Part shown: positions 29,750 through 38,899 of the stretch, piece by piece | Position numbering within the stretch: position 1 is the first letter of the stretch | Layout: each line of letters starts with the position of its first letter | From: Ministeria vibrans ATCC 50519 | Taxonomy: Eukaryota; Protista; Filasterea | DNA length: 64,000 bases | NCBI GenBank assembly: GCA_943704425.1 | Contig: CALSCP010000524.1 | Span: forward strand, 1-64,000 | Reading direction: 5' to 3' | Translations under genes and position numbers: made by a program | Notes under the pieces: generated by a model | What the model was told of the DNA's origin: nothing | The model's input: the letters and a program-made list of their open reading frames with translations, nothing else | Database searches by the model: none

Positions 29750-32324
29750 GAAAAAAAAAAAACTCTCTCTCTCTTTGAATATTTGAACTGTTGACTATGC
29801 GCGTGCACTCAGTCGTGCCCTGGACGTGGTGTTGTGGTGTAATGGCGTCCGGCGGCCTCCCAGGGGGCGCAACAGCCTTAAAAATGGCTCTTTGGCTTCC
29901 ACGTGAATTTCACGCAACCGATTCGCACAGTCGCAATTCCCGCCACGTTTCTCGCTCGCACGCGTCCTTCACGCGGCGCCACAAGCAGTGTATGTCGACG
30001 CGCGTCGTGGTGGGTGGAGCAGAGGGCCGGCGGGGGCGTGAGCGTGGCGCGGCGGTGGAAGGTTGATGTTCTCCGTTGTGGTTGGTCGTCCCGTCAGCCC
30101 TGACTGCCCCCAAAATCACACTCAGCGCCATCTGTTCACTCTCTGCTTCCCGCTCCTTGCTGCTGTTAGCCCCTATGCGTGTGTGTGTGTCTTCTGTGGG
30201 TGTTATCGCATTCCAACTCAAAATCAGACTCACTTTTTTTTTTTTTTTTTTTTTTTTTTTTGTGTACACTTTCAGGTCAACTCAATTCTGGGCAAGCTCA
30301 ACACTCTCTTCAACGACATCTTTGAGAAGGTCCTCACCGACTACCGTCCCCTCTTTGCCGTCTTCTTCTTGCTGCCTCTGACTGTGATCTATGAGGTAAA
30401 ACCCATTGAGGACCGTAACGTCTACTCACTCACTGACTGACTTGTGTGTGACTGTGTGTGTATTTCTGTGTTTCAAAACTCTAGATTTTCTTCTACGTTC
30501 GCAACTGGATTGTGTTCAAGCTGTCGTCTGCGCCTCAGGAGCACGATCGCCGTGTGCGTCACGTTCAGAAGCAGGTGCGCAAGTGGAAGGACGATGGCTC
30601 CAAGACGCGCATGTGCACGGCTCGTCCCGGCTGGCTCACTGTCAGCCTGCGTGTCGGCCGCTACAAGAAGACCATGACCAACATTGAAGTGAACCTGCGC
30701 GACGTCCTTGAAGTCTGCGAAAAGACCATGACCGTCCGTGTCGAGCCCCTTGTCACCATGGGCCAGCTCACGGCAACACTCCTCCCCCTCGGCTGGACCA
30801 TCCCGGTCGTGCCTGAGCTTGACGATCTCACCGTCGGCGGTCTTATCAACGGATTTGGTGTCGAGACGTCCTCGCACAAGTACGGTCTCTTCCAGCACAC
30901 GTGCACTGAGTTTGAGGTGAGTGTTGCACTATACAATAACAAAGTATGTTGGTGATGTATATAGAGCTCACACATTTTGTACGTGTGCGTCACATAGCTT
31001 GTGATGGCCAATGGCAGTGTGGAGGTGTGCAACAAGGACAACAACCCCGACCTGTTCTACGCCGTGCCTTGGTCCTACGGCACTCTTGGCTTCCTCGTGT
31101 CCGCCAAGATCAAGATTATTCCCGCAAGCAAGTTTGTCCGTGTCCAGTACGAGCCGCTCTTCACTCGCGCAGACTGCTCGCGTCGTTTTGAGGAGGAGAG
31201 CCGCAAGAACACCAATGAGTTTGTCGAGGAACTCATGTACTCTCGTGATGAGGTGAACATTTTTTGCAGTGATGTATTTGCATGATGATGCGTATCTCAA
31301 CATCACTCACACACAACATAATTTATGTTCTATTCTTCATTTTTTTTAGGCTGTCCTGATGACATCCACGATGGTCAACGAAATCCCCCAGGGTGTCCCT
31401 GTCAACTCCATTGGGCGCTGGTACAAACCGTGGTTCTTCAAGCACGTCGAGACGCTTCTCAACAACGCGCGCAAGGATAAAAAGGGCATCACCGTCGAGT
31501 GCATTCCCATCCGTGATTACTACCACCGCCACACTCGCTCCATCTTCTGGGAGTTGGGTGACATTATCCCCTTTGGAAACAACCCCATCTTCCGTCTTCT
31601 TGCTGGCTGGATGGTTAGTACTCTACCGCACTCATATACACTTAATGACTGTGTACTTTGCCGGTTTAGGTTCCTCCTAAGATTTCGCTGCTGAAACTGA
31701 CCGAGACCAAGGCAACCAAGAAGCTGTACGAGCTGCACCACGTCGTGCAGGACATGCTCATTCCCGTGCGTGACCTCGACAAGGGCCTCGACTGCTTCCA
31801 CACCGAGTTTGATCTCTACCCTCTCTGGGTAAACCACGCGACTGTAAATCAATACTTTTCTCAAAAGGTGTGTCTGTGTTCCGTAGATTTGCCCGATGCG
31901 CATCAAGACGGAAGGCAGTGAGCGCAACCCTATGTTGCGCCCGCTCGACGAAGACGAGATGTTTGTTGACCTGGGAGCGTACGGTACGCCCAAGGTCGGT
32001 AACTTTGTTGCCAAGGAGACTATGCGTCGCGTCGAGGAGTTTGTGCGCGACCACAATGGCTTCCAGGCTCTCTATGCCGACTGCTACATGTCCCGCGAGG
32101 AGTTCTATGAAATGTTTGACCATCGTCTCTATGAGAAGATGCGTGCGAAGTATGGCTGTGAGAACGCCTTCCCCGTCGTCTACGACAAGGTACCTAGTCT
32201 CTCTCTGTATCACTTGTTTTTATCCCTGTGTGTGATGTGTGAGTTCCTTTGATTGTGTTTGAATGTCACTTGTCTTTGACTCTTTTGTATCTTGTTTTAG
32301 ATCTCGCGTGCTGCTCGTCTTTGA
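29589..32324 (+). CDS. DHCR24: Delta(24)-sterol reductase (DHCR24/DWF1)
   Basis: [88 protein letters not shown]. Eight exons. Confidence 0.96.
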
Positions 32325-32423: not shown

Positions 32424-35400
32424 TTACAAAAACTCTCTCAGTACTCTCTCACACTCGTCGTGGCCTTTCTCTTGTGCAATTGAGAGTGCTGTCTTGTTCG
32501 TGGTGGTGGCAAGACGCAAGTCTGCCTTGCGACCACAAAGCAGTCGCAATGCCTCTGGCTGGTTGGAAAGACATGCGACCATTGTCGCAGTGTAGCCAAA
32601 TCCGTTGCGCGCGTTCAACTGTGCTGAAGACACAAACTCACATAAGACCGAAAGCACATTGGTGTGCCCGTTCTTGGCAGCAATCATGAGAAGTGTAGCG
32701 CCACTCTGATAGGTCGTGCTGGCGAGTTGTTGGTCGAGCGTGCAGAGCGTCCGTGTCACAACTTCTTCACCTCTCCGCACTGCTTCGCGCAGGACGGGGC
32801 GCAAGGAATCCGCAGAGTATTGACCCTGTGGCATCACAGCAAGTACAAAGGCAGTAGGAAAGTGTGTATTCGCAACCGCGACCCTGAGAGCGCTCTGCAA
32901 CTCGCGAGATTTTGAATTCGAGACAGAACAAAGATATTCCACGCAGCCAGTGTGCCCGAAGTGAGCAGAAATAGTCAGAACAGAGTGTAGTTGTCTAGGC
33001 TCAGAGTTATCTGGATTCTCAAAAAGGTATTTCAAGCAATCACGATGCCCTTTTGCTGCTGCATACAGCAACGCAGTCCACCCATCCTTGTCCTGTCGTG
33101 GTTCATTGCCACCTGGCTGTGTAAACAGGTACTCCACACAGCCAAGATGACNNNNNNNNNNNNNNNNNNNNNNNNNNNNNNNNNNNNNNNNNNNNNNNNN
33201 NNNNNNNNNNNNNNNNNNNNNNNNNNNNNNNNNNNNNNNNNNNNNNNNNNNNNNNNNNNNNNNNNNNNNNNNNNNNNNNNNNNNNNNNNNNNNNNNNNNN
33301 NNNNNNNNNNNNNNNNNNNNNNNNNNNNNNNNNNNNNNNNNNNNNNNNNNNNNNNNNNNNNNNNNNNNNNNNNNNNNNNNNNNNNNNNNNNNNNNNNNNN
33401 NNNNNNNNNNNNNNNNNNNNNNNNNNNNNNNNNNNNNNNNNNNNNNNNNNNNNNNNNNNNNNNNNNNNNNNNNNNNNNNNNNNNNNNNNNNNNNNNNNNN
33501 NNNNNNNNNNNNNNNNNNNNNNNNNNNNNNNNNNNNNNNNNNNNNNNNNNNNNNNNNNNNNNNNNNNNNNNNNNNNNNNNNNNNNNNNNNNNNNNNNNNN
33601 NNNNNNNNNNNNNNNNNNNNNNNNNNNNNNNNNNNNNNNNNNNNNNNNNNNNNNNNNNNNNNNNNNNNNNNNNNNNNNNNNNNNNNNNNNNNNNNNNNNN
33701 NNNNNNNNNNNNNNNNNNNNNNNNNNNNNNNNNNNNNNNNNNNNNNNNNNNNNNNNNNNNNNNNNNNNNNNNNNNNNNNNNNNNNNNNNNNNNNNNNNNN
33801 NNNNNNNNNNNNNNNNNNNNNNNNNNNNNNNNNNNNNNNNNNNNNNTGACTCATTCCATACCATTCAACATCAGCAATGTACAAGTCAGACTGGACAAAG
33901 TGTCGCACTGCACCACAAATGTGAAAGTCTGAAGACACATCAACATTCACAAAACTGTCGCACCCTTCAACGCCAAACACTCTCAAGGCAATCATCTCAT
34001 GCCCCTTTGCAACACAGGCATAAAAATCGCCTGCACTCTGACTCGTCAACCAGTCGCGCACCGACAAATGGAAGAAGCTCAGACCACCTTCCGCATCCTC
34101 ACTCAGATACTGAGACAAGCGTCCGAGACACCGATAAAAGAAGATGGGATCGCGTTGCTTCGGGTCAATTCCACCAGCGTGTGACACAACAGCAAACAGC
34201 TGCTGGGGAGTGAGCGGTTCGCAAGCTGCCAACAGCACGTTGACAATGGGCAGCACATGAATGCAATAATAGTCGGCGTCAAACTCAGTACGAAAGCACA
34301 AGAGATAGAAGGCGTCCATGTCATCACCAGCAGCGCCAGTTTCCCAATCTAGCTCACGGCCAATCACCAAATAGTCAAGGGCCACCGTGGCCCACTGGAA
34401 GTTCCCATGCGCACGCTTAACAAAAAGATCAAAGTCGATCGTCACACCAATGGGACCCAGCCGTGTTTGAGCATACAGCTTCATGTCCTCCTTCCCTGCA
34501 ACATCGTCGACAAGGTCCACACGCTGCCATAGATTGACGTGAGATAGAACGGACGTGACTCTCGGAAGACGACGGCTCGTCACCAGAACGCGCAGCCAGC
34601 GCGGACAATCCCGAGCCAGTTTGTGCACCAGCTCTGTCACGGTTGTCGTCTCGCCACTCTCGAGAGCCTCATCAAGACCGTCCACAACGATCACGTATGT
34701 CACAGCATCTTTTGTCACCTCAACAGGCTTGGGAATGCGACATAGGGTTCGAGCAAGAGCGCCCACCATCTGCGACGGTGTCAAACGCAGCTGCCCGCCA
34801 CCGAGCTCCTCCTTGATAACCACCTTGTATGTCTCGCTAAAGTGCGGAAGGCCCTCATTGCAACGCGACAATAGAGTCGTAGCAAATGTCTCGGCCTTGC
34901 GTGTCGATTCCACGTCGCGACGACACACGTAGTGGGCAGCAAGCATAATACAATCGACACGCTGATAGGACAGTTCAGGCGGACACACAATTTGCGCGGC
35001 AATCGCACTCTTGCCGAAACCTGGATCGCCAATGAGATGCACGCACGCCCCGCTCGCAAGCTTCGCTGCAATACTCTTCAGTAGCTCGTCGCGTCCGACA
35101 AACGCGGAAGTGCGCCGAGGCACAAATGATGGGTGCGACTCGTCGTACTCATGCAATTGATCTTTGGGAAGGGCCAACCGAGACGTTTTCATATGACTCA
35201 TTTTCAGGGCAATCTGACGAGAGACGGCAAGAGCGTCAAGCAGAGTCCTAAGTGACTTGACACACGAATCAAGCTGCCACGTCGTCTCCAGATCTTTGTC
35301 ATGGCGCATCTCCCCAATGAGCACCGTCAGCAGGTTGGCCGCCTCAAGTGCCGCTGAGCGCTTCTCTGGCGTCAATGCAGCACCAATTTCGCTTTTCTCA

Positions 35401-37096
35401 ATGAGGCAGCGCACCTGCGTCACGAGCACGTCGATGCTCCATTGGCAATCATGGTGGTAGTAGCTCTGCTCGGTCTTGTTGTCTCGCTTAAACGCGACAT
35501 AGGCCCACGGATCGAGCCCAGTGGCAGCAGCATCGGTTAGTTGTGTGTCACTAACGGGCAGGGTCTGCAGGGATTTCTTGACCAGCTGGTGTGCTTCTGT
35601 GGTAAACAGCGCAAAACATCCGTGCACACGCATGAACACCTCATCAATGTCGGTGTAAGGAACATGTGCAGACTGCAGCTGCTCATTTGCACCGACAAGG
35701 CGCGCTCCCCAGAGTTGCCGCAGAGAACCAGCGACACCAAGAGCATCGTCACGGGTATCGTCGCTAACATCAATGTCGCACTCGCTGAGTAGAAGAAGAA
35801 GGTCGGCCACGCACGCAATGCCACGAGCAATGCGCGTCGGGGCGACATAACTGTGACCGTTGTCGTTGCGCAGTGGGAAAATGACGGCAATGTAAGCGAG
35901 AAGGCGCTTCTCCAGGTCAGCAATGGCACCGGAGAAGTGAGCAGTGAGCAGCTCGGTCGCGTGGTGTCGCAATAAGAGACACACCGAGTACACATCCCAT
36001 GTGTCTGTGTCGTCCAAGTCGGTCGGACGAGTGGCGTCACTGAGATCGCAGTGGGGTTTGTCGAAGCGCGCCTTGAAGTCGTCGTCGTCGGGGTACAGTT
36101 TGCGCAGCCATGAGTGCACCAGTGGAGCAACGATGCGCTTGACTTCGCGGAATGCCATGCGCAACTTGAGTGCTGCTTCGGTGTGCACGGTGATGTCATA
36201 CGGTGTGCGCACGTTGGTTGTTGTTGGGCTCTTGAGCAAACGGGAGTTGTCGATCAACGTTGTCATGTCGGCAACACTAGGATGGCTCCAGTCGAGTGAG
36301 GGTTGAACAAGACCGCTTTGAAGGTAGCCCAAGAGAAGCTTGATGTCTCGTGGGGTGGAAAACTTTGCAGACAGGTCGAGGAAGAGGCGTGCTGCTTGTT
36401 CGACAACGGTTGGTGTGATGGAAATGGCGGTGGTCACCTGCCAAACGAGATCGCGGAGCAGTGGTCTGGCCGAAGCTGAAAGGGCCGAGAGTGCAGTGAG
36501 CGAGTTATAGAGTGTGTTGAGAAGCGCTGCGACGGCGGGATTGTGTGCGTAGTGATCGAAGACGGTGTTGTTCTTCAGGACAGCAAGAAGAAGACCCAAC
36601 TTGCGAAGTTTGGCGTCGGAAGGCACTGGCGACAACTTGACAATGTCGCGGTACACTGTGCAAACGGTTCGAGAGACGACCGACTTCGGCGGCACACCTG
36701 CGTCATCCAGGCCGTCGAAAAGCGCGCGGAGGCGCGGAAAGAAGGGGAGAAGCGCGTCGTCAGCATTCACCCCCCAAAACACATGCTTTCTCTTAGAAAA
36801 AGCGAAGCGTAAGAACTTGTATATGCAATAGTGTTTTACGGAGTTACCTCTGGAGTGTTCACAATCTTGAAGCAGGCGATGGCGATGTCGGAATAAACGT
36901 CGTGAAAATCGACGTCGGCGGATTTGCAATCGTCTTCGAGCAATCGCAGCTCGGCAGCGCCACGATCCTTAACGAGGTGCTCGCAAGAGCAACGGCATGT
37001 TGTGGGTGACCGAGGAGTGTTGCATCTGCCAGACTTGGTGCACGCAGCTCGTGCGGGGAGACCTGAGAGTGAAAGAGATAACTGTCAGCTCCAACA

Positions 37097-37128
<32 letters not shown>

Positions 37129-37162
37129 GAACGAACGAGCGCGCATATCCCGACGTACTCAT
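32424..37162 (-). CDS. NLR-like STAND protein: Cys-rich/helical N-terminus, tandem Swt1-like HEPN domains, NACHT (TANC-like), winged helix, ankyrin repeats (695-N gap in the repeat array)
   Basis: Micro-exon ATGA at 37162-37159, exon at about 37062-36848, then a long exon from about 36792. LRNDNGH at 35853-35870, Walker A GDPGFGKS at about 35007-35030, Walker B IVVDGLDE at about 34668-34691, LVTSR, GNFQW, FFHLSVRDWL. Ankyrin repeats GWTALLYAA, GATLLMIAA, GYTATMVA. Confidence 0.88.
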
Positions 37163-37294
37163 GAGCAAAGGTATCACTGTGTTCGCAAAGAAAAATGGGG
37201 TCGGAAAGTCGCGAGTTGAGACAGTGGGAAAAAAAAAATGAAATGAATATAATAAAATTAATTGATCACACATTTGTGCCCTTTCTCACACTTC

Positions 37295-38899
37295 ATGTCG
37301 CGAAGGCCACTTGCCGAGAAGATAGCGGGAGCCTTTCCTGTAATATTTGTTACGCGTAGGAAGAAAACATGACACAACGATCAAAACGAAAAGTTCACCA
37401 CTTCTCTCCTTCGCTCCACAGTGCTCTTTGGCTGGTCCTGGTACACTGTGGTGTTTGTGCTTAGCCCAACACTTCCCGTGGGCGGTCAGGTGTCTGTTAT
37501 TCTCGCTGAACATTTGGTACAATACCAATAGAAAACGAAATGTCGACATCCCATAACCTTTTTGTCGTTTTGCCGCTTCCCGACCAGCTTCTGGCCTTAG
37601 CGGTGTGGTCATGGGTGAAAACAATGGCGCAGACACCCTCTGAGCCGCCGGCGTTCTTCTCGGCGACGCGCGATCAGCTTGAATTCGACGAGTACGACGA
37701 TGTCATTGGCGTCGACGCACATCCCGAGAAGGACCGCCTTGCGTGCATCCGCCAGCGCACCAAGAACGGCAAGGTACCGCCGCCTTAGGCGAGTGCTTGG
37801 AGTGGCATGCGGCTGTGCAGCTCACGTCGGTTTGTTTGTGTAGTTTCGCTACTGCCATCCCTGTCAGGCACTCAAACCCGATCGCGCACATCACTGTTCC
37901 TTCTGCCACCAATGCGTCCTCAAGTTTGACCACCACTGTCCCTGGGTCAACAACTGTGTTTGCTTTGCAAACTACAGATATTTCTACCAGTTTGTCTGTA
38001 AGACTTAGAAAATAGTTCAAAGTGAAAGAAACTCATACTTTTGTACGTCTAGGTTATGCCTCACTCTACACAGTCTTCATCTTCTGCGTCACACTTCCCG
38101 TAGCAATCAGTTTCTTTACAGTAATCAACCGCCTAAATACTCCTCAACGCCCTCACCCTAAAGGCAACCCTAATTTTTCTGTCTCTACTTAGGGCTCCAA
38201 CACCCAACACAGTGACACTGCCATTCGCATCCAACTTCTTATGCTCTGTTTCATCTCTCTCCCTTTTTCCCTCGCCGTCATTTCTCTCTCGTCCTACCAT
38301 TCTTTTCTCATCCACTCAAACTCGACCACAAATGGTAAATACTCCATGTTAATACGATGATATTGGATATTGTCTCACTTTTCTTTTCTTTCCAGAGGCA
38401 CTTTCTGCTCCTCGATTCGATGTCAAGCTGGTGAAAAAGAATGGTTATGATTTGGGCAGAAAAGCTAATTGGGAACAAGTCAGATTAAAACAAAAGAAAG
38501 CTGTGTCTGTGTTTGAGTCTCATTCTTTATTTTTAATAGGCTTTGGGTCCGTTTGGTCTCTCTCGATTTTTCCCCATCAACTTACCGGTGCAATCAGGCC
38601 CTGAAAACCAGTAAGACCTTAAAGTCCTCTCCTAGCAATCTCTCATGGGCTTCCTTTTCAGACTTTGCAATGGTTTTTCGTATCCATTGTGTGCGACTGC
38701 AGAGCCCGTCGATTTGGACGGTCCCGTTTCCGTTGACGTGGGCGCACCCGCCTTGGCCTCCACAACGCCACCAGCCGCCAGCCATAGCAATACGAGTAAC
38801 AGTAGTAGTATTAATAGTAGTAGTAAGGCAAAAGGGAAGGGAGGTGTTCCGGAACTCGCGACACTCTTGGGCGGTGCGGATGGCGATGAAAGCGAATAA
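37295..38899 (+). CDS. DHHC palmitoyltransferase (ZDHHC2/15/20-like)
   Basis: [39 protein letters not shown], TTxE motif (NSTTNE), [11 protein letters not shown]. About 8 exons. Confidence 0.92.

Follow-up and report, generated by a model that had tools for sequence, protein, structure and literature searches.

A NACHT-ankyrin locus of Ministeria vibrans with a tandem pair of HEPN-like units

The locus

Cas13, Csm6, RNase L and many abortive-infection systems act through HEPN RNases. In animals, plants, fungi and bacteria alike, the central switches of intracellular immunity are NLRs. A gene that appears to join the two lies on the minus strand of a 64,000-nucleotide stretch of DNA from Ministeria vibrans ATCC 50519 (contig CALSCP010000524.1, positions 1 to 64,000; hereafter the window). 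Its product is predicted to carry, in order, an N-terminal helical extension, a tandem pair of HEPN-fold units, a NACHT NTPase of the NPHP3/TANC type with a winged helix, and ankyrin repeats (Table 1); it is read here as an NLR-like protein with a putative RNase effector. The motifs quoted in the original prediction for this locus (RNDNGH, GDPGFGKS, IVVDGLDE and LVTSR) lie on the minus strand where they had been placed, and the combination it described, a HEPN-like pair with one canonical and one degenerate member on an intact NACHT and ankyrin repeats, is borne out by the conserved motif, the predicted structures and the homology of the two units. Apart from one detail, corrected below, the observation holds up largely in the form given. 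Amino acid (aa) numbers refer to the long open reading frame (ORF) as listed, and the exons were searched one by one.

Two homologous helical units

The two consecutive helical units that had been proposed upstream of the NTPase are each approximately 145 aa long and align with each other in a profile-profile comparison by hhalign with a probability of 90% and an E-value of 2e-7; the score of 43.5 compares with a maximum of 26.2 in 150 block shuffles and 13.2 for a reversed control. Judged by this alignment, the two units are a homologous tandem duplication. Unit 1 has the reported R-N-x3-H motif (R354 to H359), which follows the pattern R-[NH]-[DT]-x-x-H in the family; its Arg and His are the sole invariant columns of unit 1 among eight homologues of 23-63% identity. 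The form R-[NDH]-x3-H occurs at least once in 32% of shuffled proteins, so the motif alone is unremarkable and its weight comes from conservation. Six homologues that have unit 1 share an invariant W-D pair (aa 311-312), located at the start of helix 69-87 of the structural model described below; it is a candidate for the conserved acidic residue that HEPN domains carry in helix 2 close to the motif.

Unit 2 had been described as keeping the His and losing the Arg; the profile alignment reverses this, as R542-H543 of unit 2 falls on R354-N355 of unit 1 and the segment with the catalytic His is deleted. By this alignment unit 2 is shown to keep the Arg and to have lost the catalytic His, and it does not contain an Rx4-6H motif. 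The Arg-His pair is invariant in every sequence that has unit 2; conservation this strict speaks for a working partner and against a degenerating copy.

Fold of the units

The AlphaFold model of unit 1, built from eight sequences, has a predicted local distance difference test score (pLDDT) of 82 and a predicted template modelling score of 0.77. Its helices span residues 4-34, 69-87, 93-111 and 120-139, and residues 38-68 form an additional helix and loop; the Arg (residue 110) ends helix 93-111, the third core helix, and the His (residue 115) lies in the loop to the fourth. In HEPN domains the motif Arg is found at the end of a core helix, the His in the loop to the fourth helix, and a polar N, D or H follows the Arg (PMC3710099); since the unit 1 motif is positioned in this way and both residues are invariant in all eight homologues, it conforms to the HEPN definition.

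A comparison of predicted structures with HEPN domains, proposed as a check, comes out in favour of the fold with VIA and falls short of significance with Foldseek. For the two-unit model, the first VIA match and the only one with Z≥8 is the yeast Swt1 HEPN, over unit 1 (Z 9.3, root-mean-square deviation 3.8, 135 of 136 residues). For the unit 1 model, 10 of the 15 top matches contain HEPN domains at Z 5.6-7.4, namely a Cas13-type HEPN, Swt1, AbiA, a HEPN toxin, 2hsb, 1wwp, Roquin, 1ufb, sacsin and 1jog; Swt1 reaches Z 7.4 and the Cas13-type HEPN 9fcv ties for top at the same value. The best matches of unit 2, whose model has a pLDDT of about 70, are 2hsb HEPN (Z 6.9), 1jog (Z 6.3) and the sacsin HEPN (Z 6.1). 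The first of these, 2hsb, is AF0298, an Arg-only HEPN; Arg-only HEPNs are known from AbiV and AF0298 and may use an alternative His (PMC3710099). A language-model feature search links unit 1 to HEPN_Swt1 clusters with a score of 0.88, which is a lead only; the same search with unit 2 alone gave nothing usable.

Several results weigh against an active HEPN effector. Neither unit matches a Pfam HEPN family at E≤10 in the four members tested, the PADLOC models match neither unit, and a search of PDB sequences with the unit 1 profile (hmmsearch) gives no match at E≤10. Foldseek against the PDB is not significant for either the two-unit or the unit 1 model. The hhalign comparison of unit 1 with the three Swt1/CXorf38-like HEPNs of the same genome is not significant (P 0.047, probability 1%), with the motifs in register. 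VIA scores of Z 6-9 are reachable by chance in helical bundles and are not decisive, and the closest structural match, the HEPN of yeast Swt1, is described as probably lacking catalytic activity (PMC3710099). In addition, the sensor part of the protein is broken by an assembly gap. Genome-wide scans with PF18731 and PF18738 did not match the locus or its paralogues, and a word search seeded with the HEPN_Swt1 domain of another gene of the genome (C1090), intended to give a deeper Swt1 profile, returned no scored matches.

With motif conservation, motif position and predicted fold taken together, unit 1 is best read as a HEPN, and its HEPN-fold identity is considered likely. Sequence-level membership of HEPN_Swt1 or HEPN_DZIP3 is not borne out, as neither gives a sequence-profile match at E≤10; the units are treated as a new, divergent HEPN family by predicted fold, outside both families at the sequence level.

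The units may have the HEPN fold and be non-catalytic, serving RNA binding or homotypic contacts, with the protein acting as a sensor or scaffold whose output lies elsewhere. They would then resemble the inactive Swt1 HEPN dyad and the sacsin and Roquin HEPN domains; the best structural match is itself a dyad that is probably inactive (PMC3710099), unit 2 is without the canonical His, and the HEPN nuclease profiles do not match. However, inactive HEPNs typically lose the Rx4-6H motif (PMC3710099), whereas in unit 1 Arg and His alone are fully invariant among eight diverged homologues, and the typical polar Asn follows the Arg, which is the pattern of active families. A non-catalytic pair is regarded as unlikely, and a predicted RNase effector remains the preferred reading of the module.

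The NTPase, winged helix and ankyrin repeats

The NTPase displays Walker A (GDPGFGKS, 35030-35007), Walker B (IVVDGLDE, 34691-34668) and LVTSR (34586-34572) on the minus strand. Pfam NPHP3_N matches aa 602-786 with 51.7 bits (cut-off 24.8; NPHP3_N/NACHT 1.5e-13), with weaker matches to NACHT, AAA_16 and nSTAND1; the Pfam NACHT model itself stays under its cut-off (21 vs 26.7 bits), and the approximately 370 aa ahead of the NTPase match no Pfam family. The HTH_TANC1 match spans aa 891-984. By these motifs and profiles the protein has a P-loop NTPase of the STAND (NLR-like) kind, with Walker A, Walker B and a following winged helix.

The minus-strand ORF extends from 36929 to 32424 (stop 32424-32426) and is broken by a run of 695 N at 33152-33846. 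On either side of the gap one frame only is open up to the N run; continuity of frame across the gap is uninformative because the gap length is an estimate. In the paralogue C1656 the piece before the gap aligns to residues 371-790 and the piece after it to residues 878-1134, in order, so that at least approximately 88 aa, comprising a linker and the first repeats, would be missing in the gap. C1656, the second paralogue C656 and the 1770-aa homologue P0003 each have the N-terminal module, NACHT, winged helix and ankyrin repeats in one uninterrupted ORF. The effector and NTPase of the window are contiguous; the ankyrin repeats are placed in the same polypeptide by analogy with these three proteins. 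The ankyrin arrays of C1656 (L009, approximately 6500-7452) and C656 (L010, approximately 5400-6056) consist of near-identical units of about 33-40 aa (VAGEYSALT.AVR.GH.EIVELLL). Each array extends into an assembly gap, and the gap in the window probably also stems from collapsed repeats.

Distribution of the family and exchange of effectors

A profile of the N-terminal module finds five proteins among 1.84 billion cluster representatives (E≤0.001), from two Logan run assemblies and three metagenomes. The host genome holds three copies of the family (the locus, C1656 and C656), and eight sequences of it are known. A count of paralogues and of effector swaps had been suggested, and both were found: besides the three genomic copies, P0001 carries the module on another STAND NTPase. 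Its copy of the module is 56% identical to that of the window; it is followed by a membrane segment and an NTPase, with no NACHT-ankyrin part, and this NTPase is homologous to that of C312, a further gene of the host genome (E 1e-34). A tandem module on two STAND chassis, one of which bears two kinds of HEPN head, is what is expected of a swappable effector, and the comparison of P0001 with the window and C312 shows the module as a predicted effector portable between two STAND chassis.

C312 (L017, 515-4378, minus) is a 1287-aa ORF whose HEPN (RNNWAH) belongs to DUF4559, the domain of CXorf38 (PMC4554924). It also has TDTVA-type repeats and a membrane segment, and its nSTAND5/NB-ARC-like NTPase is the one related to the C-terminal half of P0001. 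C2290 (L016, 2304-4820, minus) is an 838-aa ORF with a weak HEPN_Swt1 match (RNRWAH) followed by a strong NPHP3_N/NACHT match; by its profile matches it is a second, single-HEPN NLR-like gene of the genome. C1090 (L018, 2275-3309, minus) is a 344-aa ORF with a C-terminal HEPN_Swt1 domain (58.9 bits, RNAWAH) and a helical, MIT-like N-terminal region.

Alternatively, the protein could use its RNase and STAND modules for housekeeping or signalling, for example in RNA quality control, in the stress response or as a scaffold resembling TANC or NPHP3, and not be an immune receptor. In animals, proteins of the NPHP3/TANC type, to which its NTPase belongs, do not serve as immune receptors, the genome has only three copies of the tandem-HEPN family, and all domains are under purifying, not diversifying, selection. 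However, the tandem module and a CXorf38-type HEPN are swapped between STAND chassis, at least 15 loci of the genome pass the NPHP3_N cut-off, and the family is patchy and extremely rare; swapping, numerous NACHT loci and patchiness are usual in conflict systems rather than in core functions. A housekeeping role is rated improbable, and somewhat more so than a non-catalytic pair; a role in defence is preferred.

Gene structure

The genome is that of a eukaryote, of approximately 29.7 Mb in 2860 contigs, with GT-AG introns of 56-96 nt. The long ORF reaches its first in-frame ATG only at codon 222, yet it is similar to P0001 from codon 51 on. Comparison with L005, the contig of P0001 from a related species, suggests a start: a three-exon gene from 37162 to 32424 on the minus strand, with its ATG at 37162, is predicted from the conservation between the two (Table 1). 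The 96-nt intron 1 has a 94-nt counterpart in L005, and a 59-nt intron (GTATCA...CTGCAG) lies in L005 at the site of intron 2. Exon 1 (4 nt) and exon 2 (215 nt) are in frame in both sequences, with the same 215-nt length and the same phases. In the exon 2 block, 12 of the 18 differences between window and L005 fall at third codon positions and 9 are synonymous; with differences mostly at third positions and half of them synonymous, the upstream conserved block appears to be coding. The exon 2 peptide matches no Pfam family. The paralogues carry a 72-nt GT-AG intron inside unit 1.

Other accounts of the N-terminus were discarded. A frameshift in the G run near 36775 as the source of a start codon is excluded by the conservation of the FWGV frame in P0001. 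The database N-terminus of P0001 (MHSLVY...; MHSLVYTRLTQHYVCLQK; L005 661-711) is not the true start and corresponds to translated intron; true coding of P0001 resumes at L005 712 after the 59-nt GT-AG intron, and the 215-nt upstream exon is missed in the database protein. A poly-T run of about 33 nt (window 37098-37130, minus) lies within the predicted intron 1, just upstream of the acceptor; it had hinted at a trypanosomatid-style intronless gene, which is rejected given the short GT-AG introns in the paralogues and in this gene, and GT-AG introns likewise rule it out as a kinetoplastid-type trans-splicing signal. The N-terminal helical extension has no Pfam match, and its reading as a third HEPN unit is rejected for want of similarity to the HEPN units.

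Nonsynonymous to synonymous substitution ratios (dN/dS) between the paralogues are 0.20 for HEPN1, 0.28 for HEPN2 and 0.26 for NACHT, and window vs L005 gives dN 0.32, dS 1.11 and dN/dS ~0.28; both units and the NTPase are shown to be under purifying selection. A pseudogene or an assembly chimera could be suspected from the late in-frame ATG of the long ORF and from a gap, between the NACHT and ankyrin parts, whose length and join are not fixed by the assembly. Against this are the in-frame three-exon model, with exon length, phase and splice sites conserved in L005, the absence of a stop in approximately 1270 codons, the dN/dS of ~0.28, and the domain order that the paralogues and P0003 share in a single ORF. 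Either origin is very improbable, and the gene is probably intact.

The predicted ATG lies about 450 bp from the ATG (~37610) of a divergent plus-strand gene (window 37162-37610). At the other end a plus-strand gene ends near 32250, approximately 170 bp from the stop of the present gene; from its motifs it may be DHCR24/sterol-reductase-like.

Table 1. Features of the NLR-like locus in the window, from the 5' end of the gene, with the basis of each assignment
Feature	Position	Strand	Basis
Exon 1, coding part: ATG (37162-37160) and one base, then GT donor	37159..37162	-	Predicted; TCATGAGT kept in L005
Intron 1, 96 nt, GTACGT...poly-T...CTCTCAG	37063..37158	-	Predicted; acceptor CTCTCAG/G (slash marks the splice junction) invariant between window and L005
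Exon 2, 215 nt, Cys-rich 71-aa peptide	36848..37062	-	Predicted; ~90% nucleotide identity to L005
Intron 2, 56 nt, GTAACT...CTAAG, phase 0	36792..36847	-	Predicted; conservation falls between two conserved coding blocks
N-terminal helical extension, start of exon 3	36198..36791	-	Conserved in P0001, P0003 and two paralogues
HEPN-like unit 1, canonical motif	35745..36197	-	AlphaFold2 pLDDT 82; VIA matches to HEPN structures
RNDNGH, R354...H359, predicted RNase active-site motif	35853..35870	-	Arg and His invariant in 8/8 homologues
HEPN-like unit 2, non-canonical motif	35226..35660	-	hhalign to unit 1; HEPN structural matches
Invariant Arg-His, R542-H543, of unit 2	35301..35306	-	Aligns with R354-N355 of unit 1
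NACHT-type STAND NTPase	34572..35048	-	Walker A GDPGFGKS, Walker B IVVDGLDE, LVTSR; Pfam NPHP3_N
TANC1-like winged helix-turn-helix of the STAND module	33978..34259	-	Pfam HTH_TANC1 52.2 bits (cut-off 27), 7.5e-14
Assembly gap, 695 N, length estimated	33152..33846	.	Between winged helix and ankyrin repeats
Ankyrin-repeat C-terminus, 241 codons and stop	32424..33149	-	Pfam Ank_2 5.9e-30; sole open frame beside the gap

Comparison with known systems

The HEPN-NACHT-ankyrin architecture is already known and is not new. CXorf38-type HEPNs of the Swt1 clade are fused to NACHT, ankyrin, CARD and DEATH domains in cnidarians and cephalochordates (Anantharaman et al. 2013, PMC3710099). These share with the present protein an N-terminal HEPN with R-N-x3-H followed by NACHT and ankyrin repeats, and a predicted RNase effector tied to STAND oligomerisation; in C312 the host genome also has a genuine DUF4559 HEPN attached to a STAND NTPase. 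However, the protein of the window has neither a PF15112 nor a PF18731 match and no Zn-ribbon insert, and its HEPN is duplicated in tandem with asymmetric motifs (RNxxH-type and RH).

The yeast Swt1 HEPN (4pqz) is the best structural match of unit 1 and is likewise arranged in tandem as a dyad (PMC3710099). It differs in that it is fused to a PIN nuclease and has largely lost Rx4-6H (PMC3710099), whereas unit 1 keeps the motif invariantly and is partnered by a NACHT NTPase; sequence identity is approximately 10%.

DZIP3-type HEPNs occur joined to NACHT or ankyrin and have undergone lineage-specific expansion in Nematostella, oyster and Capsaspora, and HEPN-STAND proteins are known from bacteria (PMC3710099). 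Both share with the protein of the window the logic of effector, NTPase and repeats, in which the HEPN is a swappable N-terminal effector. However, HEPN_DZIP3 (PF18738) has no match anywhere in the genome at E≤10, and the PADLOC models, as noted above, recognise neither HEPN unit of the locus. With Cas13 and with RNase L and the Ire1 KEN domain the likeness is one of principle, two juxtaposed HEPN faces with sensor-gated activity; those systems contain no STAND NTPase and sense through CRISPR RNA, or through 2',5'-oligoadenylate and a kinase domain. Both HEPNs of Cas13 keep Arg and His, whereas unit 2 has an adjacent Arg-His and no canonical His.

New here are a HEPN family that escapes current profiles and is extremely rare, its constant tandem arrangement with an asymmetric pair of motifs, and its exchange among STAND chassis in a eukaryote that is not an animal.

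Proposed function

A HEPN RNase requires the juxtaposition of two motif faces, which Cas13 achieves with its two HEPNs and RNase L and Ire1 achieve by dimerising. The reading preferred here, with a probability of about 60%, is that this three-exon NLR-like STAND gene, with its tandem HEPN-fold pair, NACHT with winged helix and ankyrin repeats, encodes an RNase that is switched on by oligomerisation as a defence response. The ankyrin repeats would hold the NACHT off until a trigger binds; nucleotide-dependent oligomerisation of the NACHT would then cluster the N-terminal HEPN modules. Because HEPN RNases build their site from two facing motifs, clustering may complete a composite, metal-independent RNase site, formed either by R354/H359 of two subunits or by unit 1 together with that face of unit 2 which bears R542/H543. 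The resulting cleavage of RNA would lead to cell arrest or death as the defence response. Both the RNase activity and the immune role are inferred; the interpretation given in the original prediction is plausible and in part supported.

A more specific proposal is considered possible but tentative: the R-N-x3-H of unit 1 and the R-H of unit 2 may form a self-contained, Cas13-like bipartite RNase site that is activated by NACHT oligomerisation, which would make the tandem module, as a new HEPN family, the portable effector of several STAND chassis and an instance of NLR-with-RNase immunity in what is probably a unicellular relative of animals, from a poorly sampled eukaryotic lineage.

A eukaryotic NLR-like protein that bears two conserved HEPNs, a canonical one and one with only Arg-His, would offer a compact natural model for a STAND-gated RNase. 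The exchange of this cassette between two NTPase chassis documents effector shuffling outside animals, and the units add a HEPN family missed by current profile libraries; the finding extends, rather than changes, the 2013 comparative-genomics picture of HEPN-NACHT-ankyrin proteins.

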